In this document: positions 259 through 32,621 of the stretch, piece after piece
Numbering within the stretch: position 1 is the stretch's first letter
How the letters are laid out: every line of letters starts with the position of its first letter
DNA from: Paragordius varius
Taxonomy: Eukaryota; Animalia; Nematomorpha
Direction: 5' to 3'
Length of the DNA stretch: 64,000 nt
Assembly (NCBI GenBank): GCA_964247055.1
Contig: OZ176055.1
Location: forward strand, 4,030,001-4,094,000
Notes under the pieces: generated by a model
Database searches by the model: none
Told to the model about the DNA's origin: nothing
The model's input: only the letters and a program-made list of their open reading frames with translations
Position numbers and translations under genes: made by a program

Positions 259-1090
259 ATGAATATTGATGTGTATAGTAATAACCGGTCAGGCCTGGCC
301 AGCCGCGGTTTGGGTGTTGTGGCCAATAATACAAAGAGAATGCAAAGGAATACGGGATGCCTGTATCTTGCTAGTTTAAATGTTGGTTCATTGAAAAGTA
401 AGTTAAATGATATTGTGAGAATAATGAAAGTTAAACATATTGATATTTTGGCATTACAAGAGACTCGTTACCGCGGAAACGGAGCAAGGACTTTGGAAGA
501 GAATTTTCGACTATATTACTCAGGTGAAAGTGGCGGACGAAATGGAGTGGCAATTATCATTAATCCCAAATTGTCCAATCAGGTTAAAGAAGTAAGACGC
601 TATAACAGCCGAATCATGAATTTAGATATTTTGGTAGGTAACGAGGTCATAACAGTATTTATTATATATGCCCCGTAAATAGGTTTACCAAAACAAGAAA
701 AGGAGCAATTACGAGACTCTAGATAAAAAAATAGTCGCTCTCCCTCAGCTCAGAGTCAAGTTTTTATGTGGGGATTTTAATGGTCATCTTGGTTCAAAAA
801 GGGAATCTTTTGAAATATGACACGGGGGACATTCTTATGGAGAAAGAAACGAGGAAGGAATTAATTTGCTCAGATTTGCACAATCTCACAATTTGGCGAT
901 AGCGAACACGTTTTTCGAAAAAAGAGAGAATCATCTAGTAACGTCATCTAGTAACTTTTAAGAGCGGCATAAACAAATCTCAAATAGATTTTATACTTGT
1001 TCCAAGAGACTTATTGAAGCTTGTAATAGATTGTAAGGTCGTGCCAAACTTAGAGGTTAGTTCGCAACATAATTTACTTATTTGTAAATT
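259..1090 (+). pseudogene. APE-type endonuclease domain of the RTE element, disrupted
   Basis: Premature TAA at 676-678 (YAP*, where YAPQ is typical), later frameshifts, and a local duplication tcatctagtaac at ~930-955. Confidence 0.85.
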
Positions 1091-1600
1091 TTTCGTGAAA
1101 GAAAAGTCTAAACAAAGTGGTTTTTATTCAAAGAGATTAAAATGTATTAAGTGGGAGAAATTATCCGAAAAAAGGCAGGCTTTTATAAAAGAAATACGGT
1201 TATCCGAGGATGGTGGGTTAAATGGTGATTGGGATAAAGTAAGTCAGTTAATCAAAAAGGCAGGAACTCTAGTTTGTGGATTAAAAAGCGGAAAATCTCA
1301 AGTATACAGAGAGGCTTGGCTTTACGATGAAAGAATAATATTGATGTCACGAGAAAAAGGTAAGGCTTTTGACAAATGGAGACATACAAGGAATGATGAT
1401 GATAGAGATAAGTATAAAAGTTTAAACAAGGAATTGAAAAAATTAGTCGGCCAGGTTAAGAAAGAAAAAATGAATTTATTTTATGATGAGTTAAATAGTA
1501 AGAAAGGTTTAAACAAAGTGTATAAAGTTGCGCACCAAAGGAATAAACGCAGGATGGATTTGCCAGGTTATGCGACTGCAAAAAAGGAAAAGATGGAAGC

Positions 1601-3189
1601 TTGCTGTGCGAAAATGTAGAAATATTAAAAAGATGTAAAGAGTACTTTGTGAGTTTAGATGAAGGGGTGGGCGAGATATTCTTGCCAAATACAGTTGAAG
1701 CTACTGATAGACCAATAGAAGCAATTACACAAAAGGAAGTAGAATCTAATTTGTTAGAAATGCCAAACAACAAAGCTGTAGGATCGGACGACATAAATAT
1801 AAATTGTTGGAAAGTGCTTGGAAACTCTGGATTAAATTTTTTGGAGCGTGTATTTAATAAAGTTGTTTCAACGTATGAAATCCCGGTTGAATGGAAGGAA
1901 AGTTTAACTGTGCCTTTATTTAAAGGAAAAGATGATATAAATGAATGTAGTAACTATAGAGGGATAAAACTTATGTCGCACACTATGAAATTGTTTGAAA
2001 AAATAATTGAAAAGCGAATCAGGAAAATGATATCTATAGAAGGAAATCAATTTGGTTTCATGCCAGGAAAGTCAACAGTAGATCCTATACATGCGGTTAG
2101 GAGGTTGATTGAAAAACACATTGAAAAAAAGAAAGAATTACACGGGTTTTTGATTGATATAGAGAAGGCGTTTGACAGGATTCCTAGAGAAACTATTTGG
2201 TGGAGTCTCCGTCGTAAAGTGCCAGAAAGTTATATTAAGTTGTTACAAATAATGTACGAATCACACACCTCCAGGATTAAAACTCCACAAGGTTTATCAG
2301 AGCCTTTTCAATAAAGCATGGAGTCTACCAAGGCTCATCACTCAGCCCCTTATTGTTTATAATTTGTATGGACGAGGTAGCCAAGGTTGTTAATGTGAGT
2401 TCAGGATGGTACTTAATGTATGCAGATGACATAATCATCTTGTCTGATTCATTAATTGAATCAAAGCGAACGGTAAACAGATGGGTTGTTATGCTGGATC
2501 AATATGGTCTGAAAGTAAACAAAGCAAAAACCGAACTTATTACTTTTGGGGGTCCACAACATGAAATGGTAGTTGATGATAGTTGGGTTCTGAAGGGTAA
2601 AGAAAGTTGCAAATATCTGGTAGCTATGTCAAGTGCAGATGGTTCGTTGACTGACGATATTAATTTAAGAATAAAGAGCAGCTGGGTAAATTGGAAGAAA
2701 ATTTCGAGCGTATTATGCGATCGAAATATTGATGTTAGAGTGAAAGGTAAGATTTACAGTTCAGTTGTCCAGCCCTCAATGATGTATAATTCACAGACAT
2801 GGGGTGTCAAAAAATCCGAAGAAAGACATTTTAACGTGACTGAAATGAAAATGCTCAGAATGATGTGTGGGGTAACTAGAAAGGACAGAATCGAGAATAG
2901 ATTTATTCGTGGGAGCACAGATATTAAACCAATAGTGGAAAGAATGTCAAAAAATAGGCTACGTTGGTTCGGGCACATTGAAAGGAGAGATTCTAATTAT
3001 ATTGCAAAAATAATAGATGGTTATATAGTTGAGGGAAAACGAGGACGTGGGCGACCTAAAACAAAATGGATAGATACAGTAAAAAGAGAGGTAGCAGAAT
3101 ACGAGCTTAATGCAGAGGACGCCATAGATAGAGTTCTATGGCGAGACAGGTTGTATAACATGACCGCTCTCACGAGTGAAAACATGTAA
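1601..3189 (+). pseudogene. Reverse transcriptase domain of the RTE element, frameshifted
   Basis: RT motifs through DIEKAFD in 1601-2314; a frameshift near 2310 moves QGSSLSPLLF and YADD into the frame of ORF 2353-3189. Confidence 0.9.
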
Positions 3190-9827: not shown

Positions 9828-12689
<2,862 letters not shown>

Positions 12690-15476: not shown

Positions 15477-15862
15477 ATATACCATTTACAATTCAAATTC
15501 ACCCTTGAGCAATTCAAATTCACCCTCGAATAATTCATATTCACCTTTGAACAATTCAAATTCACCCTAAAAATAAATTGTGTTTTCGGGATAATATAAT
15601 TCATCATTAATATGAAATATATTTTTACGACATAGTTTATTATTTTTTCAGCATTATATTAGTTTTAAACAGAATTTTATATTTAAAAAATATTTAAAAT
15701 AAAGGTAATTTTTAATCTTTAAAAACGCATAATTTATTTTAGGGTGAATTTGAATTGTTTGAGGGAGAATTTGAAAATGGTAAATTTGAATTTTTTAAGG
15801 GTGAATTTGAAAATGGTAAATTTGAATTTTTCAAGGGTGAATTCGAACTGTAAAAGGTATAT
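15477..15862. mobile_element. Foldback-like MITE family B with ~20-bp tandem repeats in both arms
   Basis: TIR ATATACCATTTACA...TGTAAAAGGTATAT; the left arm repeats caattcaaattcaccctt and the right arm repeats its reverse complement. Confidence 0.85.
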
Positions 15863-16790: not shown

Positions 16791-17743
16791 CTTAGTACTA
16801 GTTACACTGTAAAAATTATAAACTTTTTCTCTAATAGATGAAAACAATGTTTTGTAATTAGATAATAATGAAAATAACTTTCATTACTGTAATTTATTTA
16901 CGAAATTGCCGGAAGATAATACTACCACTAAGGGTAAACTAGAACAAAAAATGGAAAGGTAATAAAGAGTTAAGTATAATTATAATAGAGACATGGTACT
17001 TGCCTGTTTGGCCTAACTGCATAGAGGAAGCTGCATCCTAGATCAGCTATCATGATGACCAGGGTAACGTTTAGGGATTCATTATAATTAATATAAATTA
17101 ATGGACTAAATATTTACCAAATTTTACAAAAAGGATATATATAATATTTTAGCGATGGACCACATTTCAATTTAAATGGTAAAATACCCCATTCTAGCAA
17201 GTAAAAATTAAGCCACTTGGTATATCATATCTATTTTAAATCCAAAGCATCGTTCAATTTATATCGAATAATATTAACCAAATTATATGGACGCAATATA
17301 TTTGTGTTTAGTATCCAAATGCTTACATTTTAATTTATAAATCTAACAAGCATTGATCTTAAAAAACGAATAATTCAATGCTATCAATGATTGCATATGA
17401 TACCTATAATCAGCGATAATGCGTAGTAAAAATATTTAAAAACTTATGTTCTTGTATATATAATTAATGTTCTCCAAAATTAAACGGTATAATTATTATG
17501 TTGTTAATTTAATAAATTTTATGTTAAAAAAAGACAAATTATTTACCTATTTTATTTTACTGAATTTTATAGTATCATAAAAGCAGATAATTATCATGCG
17601 CTCGCTGTTCAAACAACGATGAGCAAAATGCTGATCTGGTTTTGTTTGTTTAGGGATGGTAAAAGCGTGTATAAATAAGGTATAAACAAATTTGAACTTT
17701 CAATATTTCCAATATTTTTTTATTATTGTTTGTTATTACATAA

Positions 17744-20700
17744 ATGGAAATTTGCCCATTTTATAGTCGAATAGGCGCTTGCAGACATGGTGAAACTTGT
17801 ACAAGGCAACATGATAGGCCTGATTATAGTCGAGTATAATTGTAAATTATTTTTTAGACTATTTTGATTACCAATTTATATATAAATCCCAAGCATGCAA
17901 TCCAATCTCAACGAATAAGTAACAATATTTTTAATTTGAGTCGGAAATTTGCCACAAAATACCACAACTGATGAAGAGGAGCAATCATATTTTGATGACT
18001 TTTTTGAAGAAGTTTTTAAGGAATGTTTTGAAAAGGTAATTTTATTTAATATATTTATTGCATCATTATTCTTGGTAATCTATTATAAAATATGATGCGA
18101 ATTGGTTTTAAAACGATCGCTTAATAGGATTTAAAATTGTTATTGGCTAAATGTTTAAAAATTTAATCGAATTAATTGGTTTTAATTGTTTATTAATGTT
18201 TAACTATAACTTTAATCGGTAAGGCTAATTTAGCAAATACATATTTTGTTTTTTTATTGCTATTTAACCACTAACAATATCTGTTACTTGTTAATGAATT
18301 GTATATAATAATGGTATGAACATTTTTGGAGTTATAGATTGCACATGATGCATCATCTACCTATAAATAAATTACAATTTTACAAAATATATTTAGACTT
18401 TCCGCCAGTAGTTGAATATTTAATATGCAATAATATTTTTAGTCATATATTTAACTATTTCTCCTTCACCCAATGAGTATTGTAAATCGCCTTCAGATTA
18501 AACCATAAATAATTTCAATTAATTTTATATGTTTTTCACACTTTGAAGTAATATTCACCAAAAATATTTTAGGGGGCCAAATAAAATCTTTTTTCTGACT
18601 CAATATCCGTACTTCAAACAGGCAAACATGGCATAAAACATGTGTAGATTTTGATACTTTAAGTAAAAATAAATGAATAGCCAAAGCAAGGGTACGGCTT
18701 TGATTACCCTTGCTTTAGTACATCAATGCTGAATTTTATTTTTGATTATTGAACCCCTTACATATTTTACATAATATTTAATTGAAAACAGGCGTAAACA
18801 TGATGAATTTACTATTTTTCTTAAAGTGTTTATCTATCTTTTAATGGGTTCAATATTGTTATGGTGTTTGAATTATATTTTTTTAATTGATTAGTATGGG
18901 GAGATTGATGAAATGAACGTTTGTGGCAACCTTGGAAAACATTTATATGGAAACGTTTTTATAAAAGTAATTTGATGATCGCATTTTACGCATAACCTTG
19001 AACTGTGACTCATGTTTTTCACATAACAGTTATATGATATACCATTTACAGCTCAAATTCACCCTTAAACAATTCATATTCACCCCTGAACAATTCAAAT
19101 TCACCCTCTAACAATTCAAATTCACCCTTGAACAATTCAAATTCACCCTAAAAATAAATTATGTGTTTTCGAACTAATATAACCCATTATTAATGAGAAA
19201 TATATCTTTATGGCATAGTTTATTATTTTTTCAGTCTTATTTAAATTTAAAACAAAATTTTTATTTTTTAAAAATATATAAAAATAATGGGTAATTTTTA
19301 ATCTAAAAACATATTTTATTTGAGGGTGAATTTGAATTGTTTAAGGGTGAATTTGAATTGTTCAAGGGTGAATTTGAATTGTTCAAGGGTGAATTTGAAT
19401 TGTTTAAGGGTGAATTTGAATTGTAAATGGTATATCTTAATGTTTGATTTTTATATTTATGGATATTTAGAAACAAAAATAAGTTTTTAAATCAAACACG
19501 ATATTTTTATTTTAAATTAAATAAACATTTCTCAAATGCGTTTTTAAAACAATTTAGTTTCAAAGAAGTAAATATGCACAAAAAGCCTACCTTGACCTCA
19601 ATAATCGATGGTTTGGAGGAAGGGCTATGAATGTCGAACTTTCTCCTGTCCTTGATTTTTATGGGGCTTGTTGTCCACAATTTGATCGCGGGTATTTTAT
19701 AAGATGTTTACAGTTTTTTTGATTTTGTACAATTTTGTCGTTTGTAGGCATACAATAAAGAAGGGGCTTTTGATTTGATTTAACATTGGCATAACCTAGA
19801 TTATAATGATATTTTAATGAAGGTGGTCTATATACAAAAATTATATTATCCCTTTAAAAACGGTGTCATACTTTATAAATTTTATTATTCTTCTTCTTAT
19901 TCAAATATAGTTGTTTAGTAAATTAAATACGGATAGCTGCGAATCTTGCTAACGGTAAATTTGAATGTTTTTTAACCTAATAATCTTATATTTTATTTGC
20001 ATGGTATTATGTGTAATATTGAAAATTAAATATTTTTTTATTGGTCTTTAGTCAACAAAGAGTAGGGTCAAAGTTTAATATATCAAATCTTGTTTTTATA
20101 AAATAAGATTTCTGTATTAAGTAAATGCAGGAATTAGTTTTTGTGATTAAATTAAATCCACAGAGCAATGTTTTTTAACTTAGAATGATTATTGATATTA
20201 TATGTTGATTTTTTATTATTTTAGGGATTAATTTAATTATTTCTGCCGATAATAATATTTAAAAATCCTTTTTTATCAAAAGACATAAATGCTTATTGTA
20301 CAAAAATAATCCTCGCTAAAAGGCTATCCAGTATATTTATAATAAATTTTATCATTATTATAAAAATCCAAATCATAACACAATTTTTCTATATAATTTT
20401 AAATCAACACCTAGGCAAACATATTATTCATATTTTATAAATAAGAATAAAACGGTGTAAACAAAAGTCTATTTAATGTGTTCTTTATGAAATAGTAGCG
20501 ATATGCTAGGAGGTATGCATTTATTTCTCAATATTCTACATTATATAATGGGCTTTAATACTTTATATAAAATATTTATTATGTTATCGTCCCTTCTTCT
20601 AATATAGCGAATGTCAACGAGGTGATTTTTGTAATTTTATGCATTTAAAACCCATATCAAAAACGCTCGAAAAACGAATCGAACACTATTTGTCAGAGTA

Positions 20701-21470
20701 TGAACGCCAAATTAAACGTGAATATAAACGGTCCAAACATCATAAACACAGTAGTCGATCATCCAGTAGATCTAGTAGTAGGAGTTCTTCAAATTTTTCA
20801 ACTTCTGCCTCAAGTGATAATTCACATTCGAATGACTCTAGAAAAAACCGTACTTCCAAAAAACGCTCACATAAACATCGAAGCCACAGTGGATCCCGTA
20901 ATGCCCCTACGAGACGAACACCAGATTATGGGTGAAAAACTTATTTATTTTTATAACTCGCTGTATTTTTGATAAATGTTTTTACGTTTCAAAGCATTTT
21001 TTCTTTAATTATGATGTATTTACGCCTATACCACTTTGGAAAAGGCGCAAAGTGGATTTAAAATGCATTATTTTTTATTACTAATTTTTTAAGGCAGGAC
21101 TGTAATTTTCTAAAAAAATATTGATATTTTGACATTTTATAATATATATGGTCTTGATCTTTGATTTTATTATTTTTAATGTAAATTTGCCATTTATTGT
21201 GTACTTAGCCATAAAATTGAAACGATCGATATTGAGAAAGAGGATGATATCGATAATAAAATTGGAGATAAAGATAATATGCAAGATTTCATTGAATCGC
21301 AACTTGATAAAATTCCCAATAAAAGTTTGGTTGCCAAAAAAGGAATGCCCACATCCCCGCCAAAACCTAAGAAAATTAAGAGGGACAATGAAAACAAGAA
21401 CAAAGATTTGAGCCAGCAAACGTCCCTAGTTGCTGCCTATTTTCAACAAACAGATTCTGATTCCGAATAA
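17744..21470 (+). CDS. U2AF1: Divergent U2AF small subunit (U2AF35/U2AF1-like), ~345 aa
   Basis: Exons 17744-17833, 17858-17918, 17941-18035, 18895-18966, 19558-19691, 20608-20931, 21209-21470 (1038 nt, phase-consistent). ZnF1 [20 protein letters not shown]; [51 protein letters not shown]; ZnF2 [20 protein letters not shown]; S/R/K/H-rich tail. Orthologue versus paralogue is unresolved. Confidence 0.92.
17834..17857 (+). other. 24-nt spliceosomal intron
   Basis: GTATAATTGTAAATTATTTTTTAG, phase 0; contains an in-frame TAA; it is the only GT-AG solution joining DRPDYSR to [11 protein letters not shown]. Confidence 0.85.
17919..17940 (+). other. 22-nt spliceosomal intron with GAG acceptor
   Basis: GTAACAATATTTTTAATTTGAG, phase 1; removal restores the frame into [17 protein letters not shown]. 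Confidence 0.75.
19037..19435. mobile_element. Foldback-like MITE family B, young copy (in U2AF35-like intron 4)
   Basis: Perfect terminal ATATACCATTTACA/TGTAAATGGTATAT; 4-5 copies of the ~20-bp unit per arm. Confidence 0.88.
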
Positions 21471-30424: not shown

Positions 30425-31478
30425 ATGTCATTTTGCTTCAATAAGGGTTAAATTTAATTTATATTTTAGGGAAGGACAAAATAACTTTTTTAGCCAAAGA
30501 AGACTTTGAGAAACTACCAAACTTAGACGAAAGAACACAAAAAGCACTTTTTGAAGATGACGATGAGCCAAAAGGTTTGTTTTTTTGTTATTACCAATCA
30601 CACTGATTTATATAGATGGATGGGTGTATTGCTGCAATCGAGGTCGACTTTTTGCAATATTATATTAAGTTTATAAATTTCTGAACCTAAGTTCAAAGCT
30701 TCTTTAAATCAATCGAAATAAGTCTCTTTTAGTTTTTGCCAATGTTTAATCACTTTTAATTTTTTTTCATTATGGACTGAAGAAATCTTATTCATTTCTA
30801 GTCTTTTTTTGGCATAGTAATGATTCAATTCGTTTAAATTTTTTTATTCTAGGTTTAATTGCAAGCGATGGAAGCATAAATTGGAGCTGTCCATGTTTAG
30901 GAAATATGGCTGTGGGACCATGTGCCCAAGAATTTCGTTCGGCTTTTACCTGTTTTCACGATTCTAATGCCGAACCAAAGGGCTCAGATTGCTTAGAAAA
31001 ATTTTCCTCGATGCAAAATTGCTTTATTAAATATCCAGAACTTTATGGAGACATCGAGGAAAAGGGTGATCAGATTGGCAAAATCGATATGAACGAGGAA
31101 AATACCATTAATACAAAAAGTGAAAATAAAACTAATTCTAAATTGAATAATGAATCTCCACCAAAAAATCCAGAAATAAATAATACCAAATTAACACCTG
31201 AAACCACAAAAATATCCGGTATTTATATCTTTTAAACTGATTTTTGATTACTATTTATTATAACAATTTGAATAATAATTGTTGAGTTGTTTACGTATTA
31301 TATATTTATATTTTTCGATACAAACATATATTTTATTTTAGAAACTGAAAATCCAGAGCCTCTAAATGCCGCAAATATGGAAAACATTCGAAAATTTCAT
31401 CCTAAAACAAAAGAGGATCCCGTTCCACCACATGATTCAATCGATCGTTTTGCACCTAAAATATCGCTGTTTTGGTGA
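30425..31478 (+). CDS. CHCHD4: Mitochondrial intermembrane-space oxidoreductase Mia40, ~209 aa
   Basis: Exons 30425-30446, 30470-30574, 30853-31218, 31342-31478. [20 protein letters not shown] matches the animal N-terminus MSYCRQEGKDRIIF; [17 protein letters not shown] (CPC) and twin CX9C motifs. The last exon is less certain. Confidence 0.93.
30447..30469 (+). other. 23-nt spliceosomal intron
   Basis: GTTAAATTTAATTTATATTTTAG, phase 1; retention gives an immediate TAA after MSFCFNKG. Confidence 0.85.
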
Positions 31479-31703: not shown

Positions 31704-32621
31704 TTATAAATCATGGTTTTTATACAAATTAGAATTTGCATCAAAAAAAATTCCTTTAATTAAATCAATGTGGAGACATAAATAAGGTATGTGGTCGTTT
31801 GTGGTTGGATTTATACCATTTAAATTTGTTTGGAAATCAGATATTTCATAAAAATCAAATGTTTTATCTTTACCACTTCCTCGTTCTTTAGCTAATTCAC
31901 CCGTAGTTATGGATTGGAAATATTTTTGATCTAAATCAGTTTGTTTGACTAGTAAGCTTCCTTTCTTATACATTTGTCGTTCGTTATTGTAATTGCGACG
32001 AAATTGTGAGAAAAGTATTTCATTTTTATCATTAGATAGCGTCCCTTCCAAACGTTTTTGAGCTTGAGACAAAGATAAACCACCATCTTGAACCAAAGCC
32101 CAAAATACGGTATTATACAAATTATTAACATGACAATCTACCTGTCTCCATCTCAAATAATCCCATAAAATACGTGTATTAGGATATGCTATGATACGAC
32201 TATCAAAAACAGGTAAAACTTTCAAAGCTTTAGTTTTAAAGAAATGACCCCAAAAATAGGTATAAGCGGATGTAAAAAGACTGCAGACATGGGAGGCAAG
32301 TTTGCAAGCTCTCCGATTAACATAATCTGTGTCACGCGCAAACACAAAACTATATTCATCGCTTTGACCATAGGCACAAATAATATCGGTAAAGGTTTTC
32401 ATTACGTTGTATGCACAAAAATTCATTAATTCAAGGGCTTTTTCATCGTTAGGTTTTTGGAATTCGTGTAAATCAGTAAATTTATGGAAGCTTTTGCCAT
32501 CAATGCGACACACTATGTAACAAGCAGGGAGAATCGTATCAGATAATTCAAATGATTTTACATAATCGTATTTCTTATTCGCAAATGATAAATTTTTTCC
32601 TATTTTGGCCGTTTGATTCAT
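31704..32621 (-). CDS. THG1L: tRNA(His) guanylyltransferase Thg1, 305 aa, intronless
   Basis: KYDYVKSFE, RIDGKSFHKF (first catalytic D), YGQSDEYSFVF (second D), FDSR, WRQVDCHVNNLYNT, KNEILFSQF. Confidence 0.96.
   Translation of the reverse strand: MNQTAKIGKNLSFANKKYDYVKSFELSDTILPACYIVCRIDGKSFHKFTDLHEFQKPNDEKALELMNFCAYNVMKTFTDIICAYGQSDEYSFVFARDTDYVNRRACKLASHVCSLFTSAYTYFWGHFFKTKALKVLPVFDSRIIAYPNTRILWDYLRWRQVDCHVNNLYNTVFWALVQDGGLSLSQAQKRLEGTLSNDKNEILFSQFRRNYNNERQMYKKGSLLVKQTDLDQKYFQSITTGELAKERGSGKDKTFDFYEISDFQTNLNGINPTTNDHIPYLCLHIDLIKGIFFDANSNLYKNHDL

Follow-up and report, generated by a model that had tools for sequence, protein, structure and literature searches.

Does a gene for the small subunit of the splicing factor U2AF that is altered beside its AG-reading site and lacks the conserved N-terminus encode the retuned, sole AG reader of its lineage, or an extra copy that works beside a normal one? 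The locus that raises this question lies in a 64,000-nucleotide (nt) stretch of DNA from the horsehair worm Paragordius varius (Nematomorpha; assembly GCA_964247055.1, contig OZ176055.1, positions 4,030,001 to 4,094,000), hereafter the window, in whose numbering coordinates are given. U2AF35 (U2AF1) ranks with the most conserved of splicing proteins, its core being ~80% identical from cnidarians to vertebrates, and what is known of its residues S34, R156 and Q157 comes mainly from cancer mutations that redirect the choice of 3' splice sites. We consider it probable that the window encodes a functional, fast-evolving U2AF35 paralogue, most likely the product of a DNA-level duplication within the horsehair-worm lineage, where a canonical U2AF35 exists beside it. 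A normal AG reader and a divergent extra copy stand side by side in another horsehair worm, Gordionus; judged by sequence comparison, the P. varius gene would share its origin with that divergent copy, would have a canonical counterpart in its own genome and would be expressed.

The gene is of U2AF35 type, occupies six exons on the plus strand (17744-20935) and has a coding sequence of 780 nt, which encodes 259 amino acids and ends at a TGA (20933-20935). Its five introns (24, 22, 859, 591 and 916 nt) are all GT..AG, and the exon blocks were independently recovered by tblastn with two Gordionus proteins. The encoded protein consists, in this order, of a CCCH finger, a UHM with the RWF motif, a second CCCH finger and a tail rich in Ser, Arg, Lys and His. 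The gene and the sequence immediately upstream are laid out as follows:

17670..17675, plus strand: TATAAA motif, 74 nt upstream of the start codon, with no ATG between the motif and 17744; a possible core promoter
17741..17743, plus strand: in-frame TAA, directly before the ATG at 17744
17744..17833, plus strand: exon 1, start codon and CCCH zinc finger 1 (MEIC...CTRQH), from translation; phmmer match to U2AF23 at E=2.8e-8, Pfam zf-CCCH at 32.2 bits
17834..17857, plus strand: intron 1, 24 nt, GT..AG, holding stop codons; same position and phase as intron 2 (43 nt) of the canonical Gordionus gene
17858..17918, plus strand: exon 2, 61 nt, from translation and tblastn
17919..17940, plus strand: intron 2, 22 nt, GT..AG with a GAG acceptor, phase 1 in an Ile codon; corresponds to canonical Gordionus intron 3 (174 nt)
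17941..18035, plus strand: exon 3, acidic helix A of the UHM, from translation, alignment and tblastn
18036..18894, plus strand: intron 3, 859 nt, from the gene model
18895..18966, plus strand: exon 4, RNP2-like strand of the UHM, from translation and tblastn
18967..19557, plus strand: intron 4, 591 nt, from the gene model; carries a foldback element with 21-nt tandem terminal repeats
19558..19691, plus strand: exon 5, RWF motif of the UHM (19606-19614) and first half of zinc finger 2 (ACCPQF); phmmer match to U2AF23 at E=6e-8
19692..20607, plus strand: intron 5, 916 nt, phase 2 in a Gly codon; corresponds to canonical Gordionus intron 6
20608..20935, plus strand: exon 6, second half of zinc finger 2, LKPIS, the 83-residue tail and TGA at 20933-20935, from translation

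Removal of the two shortest introns is obligatory, of intron 1 because it contains stop codons and of intron 2 because its length is not a multiple of 3.

The architecture of the predicted protein is that of the canonical family (human U2AF35; Schizosaccharomyces pombe U2AF23, PDB 4YH8 and 7C06-7C08; Gordionus P0268), with the same domain order, zinc spacing, RWF motif and acidic helix A. Finger 1 has the spacing of the U2AF35 family, C-x8-C-x5-C-x3-H (C4, C13, C19, H23), and aligns to U2AF23 residues 18-43; finger 2, spaced C-x7-C-x5-C-x3-H and split by the phase-2 intron in a Gly codon, retains the conserved ECQRG.FCNFMH block. UHMs are recognised by an RXF motif in which X is Trp, an acidic helix A and degenerate RNP motifs (PMC5113200), and the window protein carries NNRWF at residues 121-125 as well as an acidic helix A, and aligns to the human U2AF35 UHM chain 1JMT. 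The original prediction, which was made from the sequence alone, had held that the CCCH ligands and the RWF motif are intact, and all eight zinc ligands and RWF are indeed present in the spliced translation. The 83-residue tail, with 25 Ser, 13 Arg, 8 Lys and 8 His, has six RS and five SR dipeptides and no Gly tract; it is Ser/Lys/His-rich instead of RS/Gly-rich as in canonical U2AF35.

Other identities for the gene were considered and set aside. ZRSR2/Urp of the minor spliceosome shares the finger-UHM-finger plan and also recognises the 3' splice-site AG; the core of the window protein is 52-58% identical to canonical animal U2AF35 (~170 residues), against ~38% between Urp and U2AF35 (PMC5113200), and its PDB matches are U2AF23 and U2AF35 chains only, with S. 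pombe U2AF23 and human U2AF35 the closest by phmmer. A processed retrocopy or a pseudogene is at odds with five introns at ancestral positions and phases, an intact open reading frame and a contrast in guanine-plus-cytosine (GC) content between codon positions, which is 43% at positions 1 and 2 and 25% at position 3, with 23-24% in the long introns. A ciliate-type genetic code, a thought prompted by the micro-introns and the TGA stop, is contradicted by the animal genes of the window, its kilobase-scale introns and the lack of in-frame TAA or TAG codons.

The two substitutions that make the gene unusual fall on residues that hardly vary elsewhere. By translation and by phmmer alignment to U2AF23 and the human U2AF35 chains, the Thr codon ACA at 17801-17803 (finger 1, CTRQH) corresponds to human S34, and the Pro codon CCA at 19675-19677 (finger 2, CCPQF) corresponds to S. 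pombe Arg150 and human R156, with the following Gln (Q157) kept; all three assignments agree with what had been read from the sequence at the outset. The frequency of such changes was assessed in 150 family members collected by a full-library HMMER search with exon 5, supplemented by additions from two word-index searches. Position 34 was Ser in 138 of 142 sequences and Thr in none; Ala was confined to the divergent copy of Gordionus and Cys to two Adineta sequences. At position 156, 245 of 253 sequences had Arg, and the divergent Gordionus copy was the only one with Pro; the same substitutions are not common among these relatives. The Cys at position 34 (CCRVH) of the bdelloid rotifers Adineta vaga and Adineta ricciae (P0245, P0250) is another natural variant at a cancer hotspot. 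The top match of the exon-5 search in the representative library, P0001 (1524 amino acids), is a translated 52-residue tandem repeat with a chance 'CCPKY' and no U2AF relative. A word-index protein search with the 40 finger-2 residues of exon 6, run under a length filter that leaves out full-length relatives, gave no candidate.

The contacts made by these and the neighbouring residues have been assigned in U2AF23-RNA crystal structures, in which the patches at S34 and R156/Q157 control preference at positions -3 and +1 of the splice site (PMC7505975). In human numbering, canonical U2AF35 and the window protein compare as follows:

RNA -2A: contacted by F20, C27 and R28; all kept in the window protein
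RNA -1G: contacted by C155, R165, C169, N170 and F171; all kept in the window protein
RNA -3U: contacted by H29, C33, S34, R35 and the R32 backbone; H29, C33 and R35 kept, S34 replaced by Thr (Ala in the Gordionus divergent copy), R32 replaced by Thr in both
+1G stacking and +2U bond: made by R156; Pro in the window protein
RNA backbone: contacted by E12 and K15 of the N-terminal segment; absent from the window protein

By alignment, the residues that read the AG are preserved, and those that read -3, +1/+2 and the backbone are changed or missing. The protein would retain the features required for docking on U2AF65 and for recognition of the AG, namely the fingers, the RWF motif of the UHM and the acidic helix. 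It is most likely an alternative U2AF small subunit, predicted to bind U2AF65 and to require an AG still, with lower or different selectivity at -3 and +1, and its use may be restricted to some stage, tissue or class of introns. The two divergent copies have the same Pro156 but different residues at position 34, a pattern suggesting that the -3 contact is relaxed and that the change at 156 is old and retained.

The third alteration is the loss of the N-terminal segment of 15-17 residues. Only three residues precede the first Cys in the window protein, compared with exactly 17 residues before finger 1 in 116 of 133 family sequences. It had been proposed that translation starts at MEIC with no AG close upstream and that the usual segment is missing, and both the TAA and a long AG-free stretch bear this out: the nearest AG upstream of the start codon is at 17678-17679, none occurs in 17680-17765 (65 nt without AG before the ATG), and the first AG downstream of the ATG, at 17766-17767, would delete the first zinc ligand if used as an acceptor. 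A BLOSUM scan of the plus strand over the 17.7 kb upstream found the canonical N-terminal segment at noise-level scores only. A normally spliced upstream exon cannot extend the frame because of the in-frame TAA at 17741-17743 and the absence of AG in 17680-17765; on this sequence, an upstream exon that supplies the canonical N-terminus is excluded, unless a non-AG acceptor were used. Every element of the original observation, the missing N-terminus included, is confirmed.

The only annotated horsehair-worm genome in the databases, that of Gordionus sp. m RMFG-2023 (GCA_954871325.2), contains both kinds of protein. Its canonical U2AF35 (P0154/P0268; CAK9303470.1 / XP_065321852.1), which maps to a 31.75-Mb chromosome, shows the standard N-terminus together with CSRIH and CCRQY. 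The divergent copy (P0008/P0267/P0006; CAK9301805.1, CAK9301804.1, XP_065321134.1), annotated as 'splicing factor U2AF 35 kDa subunit-like', lies on another chromosome of 34.6 Mb; it starts with MDCPFY, two residues before finger 1, its finger 1 ends in CARAH and its finger 2 begins with CCPQY. It is the probable orthologue of the window gene, with Ala34 where the latter has Thr34. Common to the two proteins are the lack of the N-terminal segment, a non-Ser residue at position 34, the changes S19P, R32T, E97D, V110Y, E120S and R156P, and an NPKH motif. A search with P0268 for other hairworm U2AF35 proteins returned none beyond Gordionus.

The overlap in derived residues exceeds what was expected. 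At 93 columns that are each at least 90% conserved among 22 canonical animal proteins, the window protein has 27 changes and the Gordionus divergent protein 21, with 15 columns changed in both against ~6 expected (Fisher p=4.6e-6), and at five of these 15 (S19P, E97D, V110Y, E120S, R156P) the new residue is the same. Maximum-likelihood trees unite the two sequences (99-100% support), a value to be taken with caution because each branch is long and exceeds the canonical ones several times in length; the window gene evolves several times faster than canonical U2AF35. A tree that forces all three hairworm sequences into one clade was not rejected (p-AU 0.535), as would be expected if the gene had duplicated within the hairworm lineage and one copy had then accelerated.

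Gene structure gives the likely route. Each of the five introns of the window gene matches, in position and phase, one of introns 2-6 of canonical Gordionus U2AF35, whose exon 1 encodes exactly the 15 residues missing from the window protein, and these matches point to duplication of genomic DNA rather than a retrocopy, followed by loss of exon 1. The public models of the Gordionus divergent copy are themselves defective: one spans 160 kb with a spurious last exon, another is incomplete, the NCBI model takes an internal Met as its start, and all lack the second half of zinc finger 2. The gene family is effectively undescribed, since these annotations are truncated or mis-joined. A local BLAST comparison of the window, entered with 19252-19291 (inside intron 4) excluded as in the other local runs, with the 15.5-kb Gordionus locus revealed no shared repeats.

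These comparisons bear on the two alternatives offered in the original prediction. That of a specialised paralogue gains support from Gordionus, which has a canonical copy together with a divergent one showing the same missing N-terminus, Pro156 and non-Ser34. That of a lineage-wide retuned AG reader, under which canonical U2AF35 would have been lost and the window protein would carry out all 3' splice-site recognition, is unlikely in our estimation, as Gordionus retains a fully canonical U2AF35 beside the divergent copy and the shared derived characters place the duplication before the split of the two hairworm lineages; loss of the canonical protein would, moreover, be unusual for a family otherwise so conserved across animals. 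Several points weigh against the reading of a functional paralogue of single origin. With 57% mutual identity, the two divergent proteins resemble each other no more than each resembles canonical proteins, and as two long branches they could owe something of their grouping to long-branch attraction. The Gordionus models end within finger 2, which confines the comparison to the part before it, and we infer the canonical U2AF35 of P. varius from Gordionus only. If the two genes were not orthologous and had come from independent duplications or convergence, being alike only as long branches, both the modest mutual identity and the meeting of the two branches in the tree would be accounted for; the derived residues identical at five sites, the shared loss of exon 1 and the extent to which the changed sites coincide make this very improbable. 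The GC content of the window (~26%) is close to the 26.93% reported for Gordionus, as a variant of this reading would have it in which the window were Gordionus DNA with a third copy; the lack of shared repeats speaks against that variant.

The contrast between Thr and Ala at position 34 is as compatible with relaxed constraint as with a defined new specificity, and no sampled words were found in three candidate RNA runs of small size with the same species label, although this counts for little as evidence. Together with the long branches, these two observations are also what a redundant duplicate would produce that has no distinct function and is drifting to loss. Such decay is, in our judgement, unlikely: the six-exon open reading frame and all ten splice sites are intact, ~45% divergence from any relative has left the eight zinc ligands, the AG-contact residues and RWF in place, and two lineages have Pro156 and further derived residues in common. 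An open reading frame that is intact across six exons and the GC contrast between codon positions are typical of coding constraint and indirectly favour function, as does the retention of the zinc ligands, the AG contacts and, in two lineages, Pro156. The functional paralogue hence stays our preferred interpretation.

Duplicates of U2AF35 have been retained in other lineages. Mammalian U2AF26 (U2AF1L4) and other lineage-specific duplicates persist beside the canonical protein and are thought to give alternative or regulated 3' splice-site recognition, with U2AF26 keeping the N-terminus, S34 and R156. Sequences named U2AF26 do not group with the window gene in our trees, and these duplications are independent of the one described here. 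The cancer variants of U2AF1 (S34F/Y, Q157P/R, R156H) affect the same two RNA-contact patches as the changes in the window protein, which by contrast are germline, fixed and located in a duplicate gene, with Q157 unchanged. S34T is conservative and keeps the hydroxyl, whereas R156P removes the arginine that stacks on +1G; no literature data on R156P were found. The description of these positions as myeloid-cancer hotspots holds for S34 and Q157 and has to be modified for R156, for which papers give R156H as a rarer recurrent mutation. A fixed, apparently functional duplicate would amount to a natural experiment on the contacts that AG recognition can do without, given that every AG-reading residue is retained.

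Another question, raised in the original prediction as a possible co-evolution, is whether the altered subunit serves the very short introns of this lineage, which splices introns of 22-27 nt. Three obligatory micro-introns were identified in the window, those of 24 and 22 nt in the U2AF35-like gene and one of 23 nt in Mia40 (30447-30469), and the gene is a candidate in the question of how introns that can hardly accommodate a normal branch site and pyrimidine tract are spliced in an animal. The second small subunit of horsehair worms might be a dedicated micro-intron reader, which would still demand AG, would have dropped the -3, +1 and backbone contacts, and would read the 3' ends of 21-27-nt introns through relaxed requirements at -3 and +1. 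The gene does sit in a genome with obligatory micro-introns, the changed residues are those that read the flanks of the AG, and the 22-nt intron (17919-17940) ends in GAG, with G being the sole -3 base that is rejected even by promiscuous S34F/Y mutants of the canonical protein (PMC7505975). We nevertheless regard such a dedicated role as doubtful. It is suggested by co-occurrence only, and three micro-introns are too few for statistics; the canonical Gordionus gene has introns of 43 nt (against 24) and 174 nt (against 22) at the homologous sites; and the long introns of the window gene also lack +1G, a feature that the AT-rich background explains. The first two introns of canonical Gordionus U2AF35 (locus L001, 6001-9558) are both 43 nt long, and our literature search found no intron statistics for hairworm genomes. 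If the dedicated role were true, micro-intron splicing in an animal would depend on a duplicated and retuned core factor.

The window as a whole is AT-rich animal DNA (~26% GC) and contains several further features. A foldback element, the arms of which consist of tandem 21-nt repeats with the core CAATTCAAATTCACCC, occurs at 19040-19425, 15489-15757 and 12208-12223. Each arm holds 4-5 copies in opposite orientation, and 14 matches were found in the window against 0.01 expected; one copy of the element is contained in intron 4 of the U2AF35-like gene, and a second precedes that gene by ~2 kb. On the plus strand, near the start of the window, a non-LTR (long terminal repeat) retrotransposon with endonuclease and reverse transcriptase is broken into several open reading frames (259-3189), and exons for immunoglobulin (Ig) domains are also present. 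The Mia40/CHCHD4 gene contains, within 30425-30575, the 23-nt GT..AG intron mentioned above, which lies in phase 1 in a Gly codon and is needed to join the exon with the start codon to the conserved N-terminal segment, with the CHCH domain downstream at 30906-31232. Tail to tail with Mia40, on the minus strand, THG1 (tRNA-His guanylyltransferase) is encoded by an uninterrupted open reading frame of 305 codons (31704-32621) that includes both Pfam domains.

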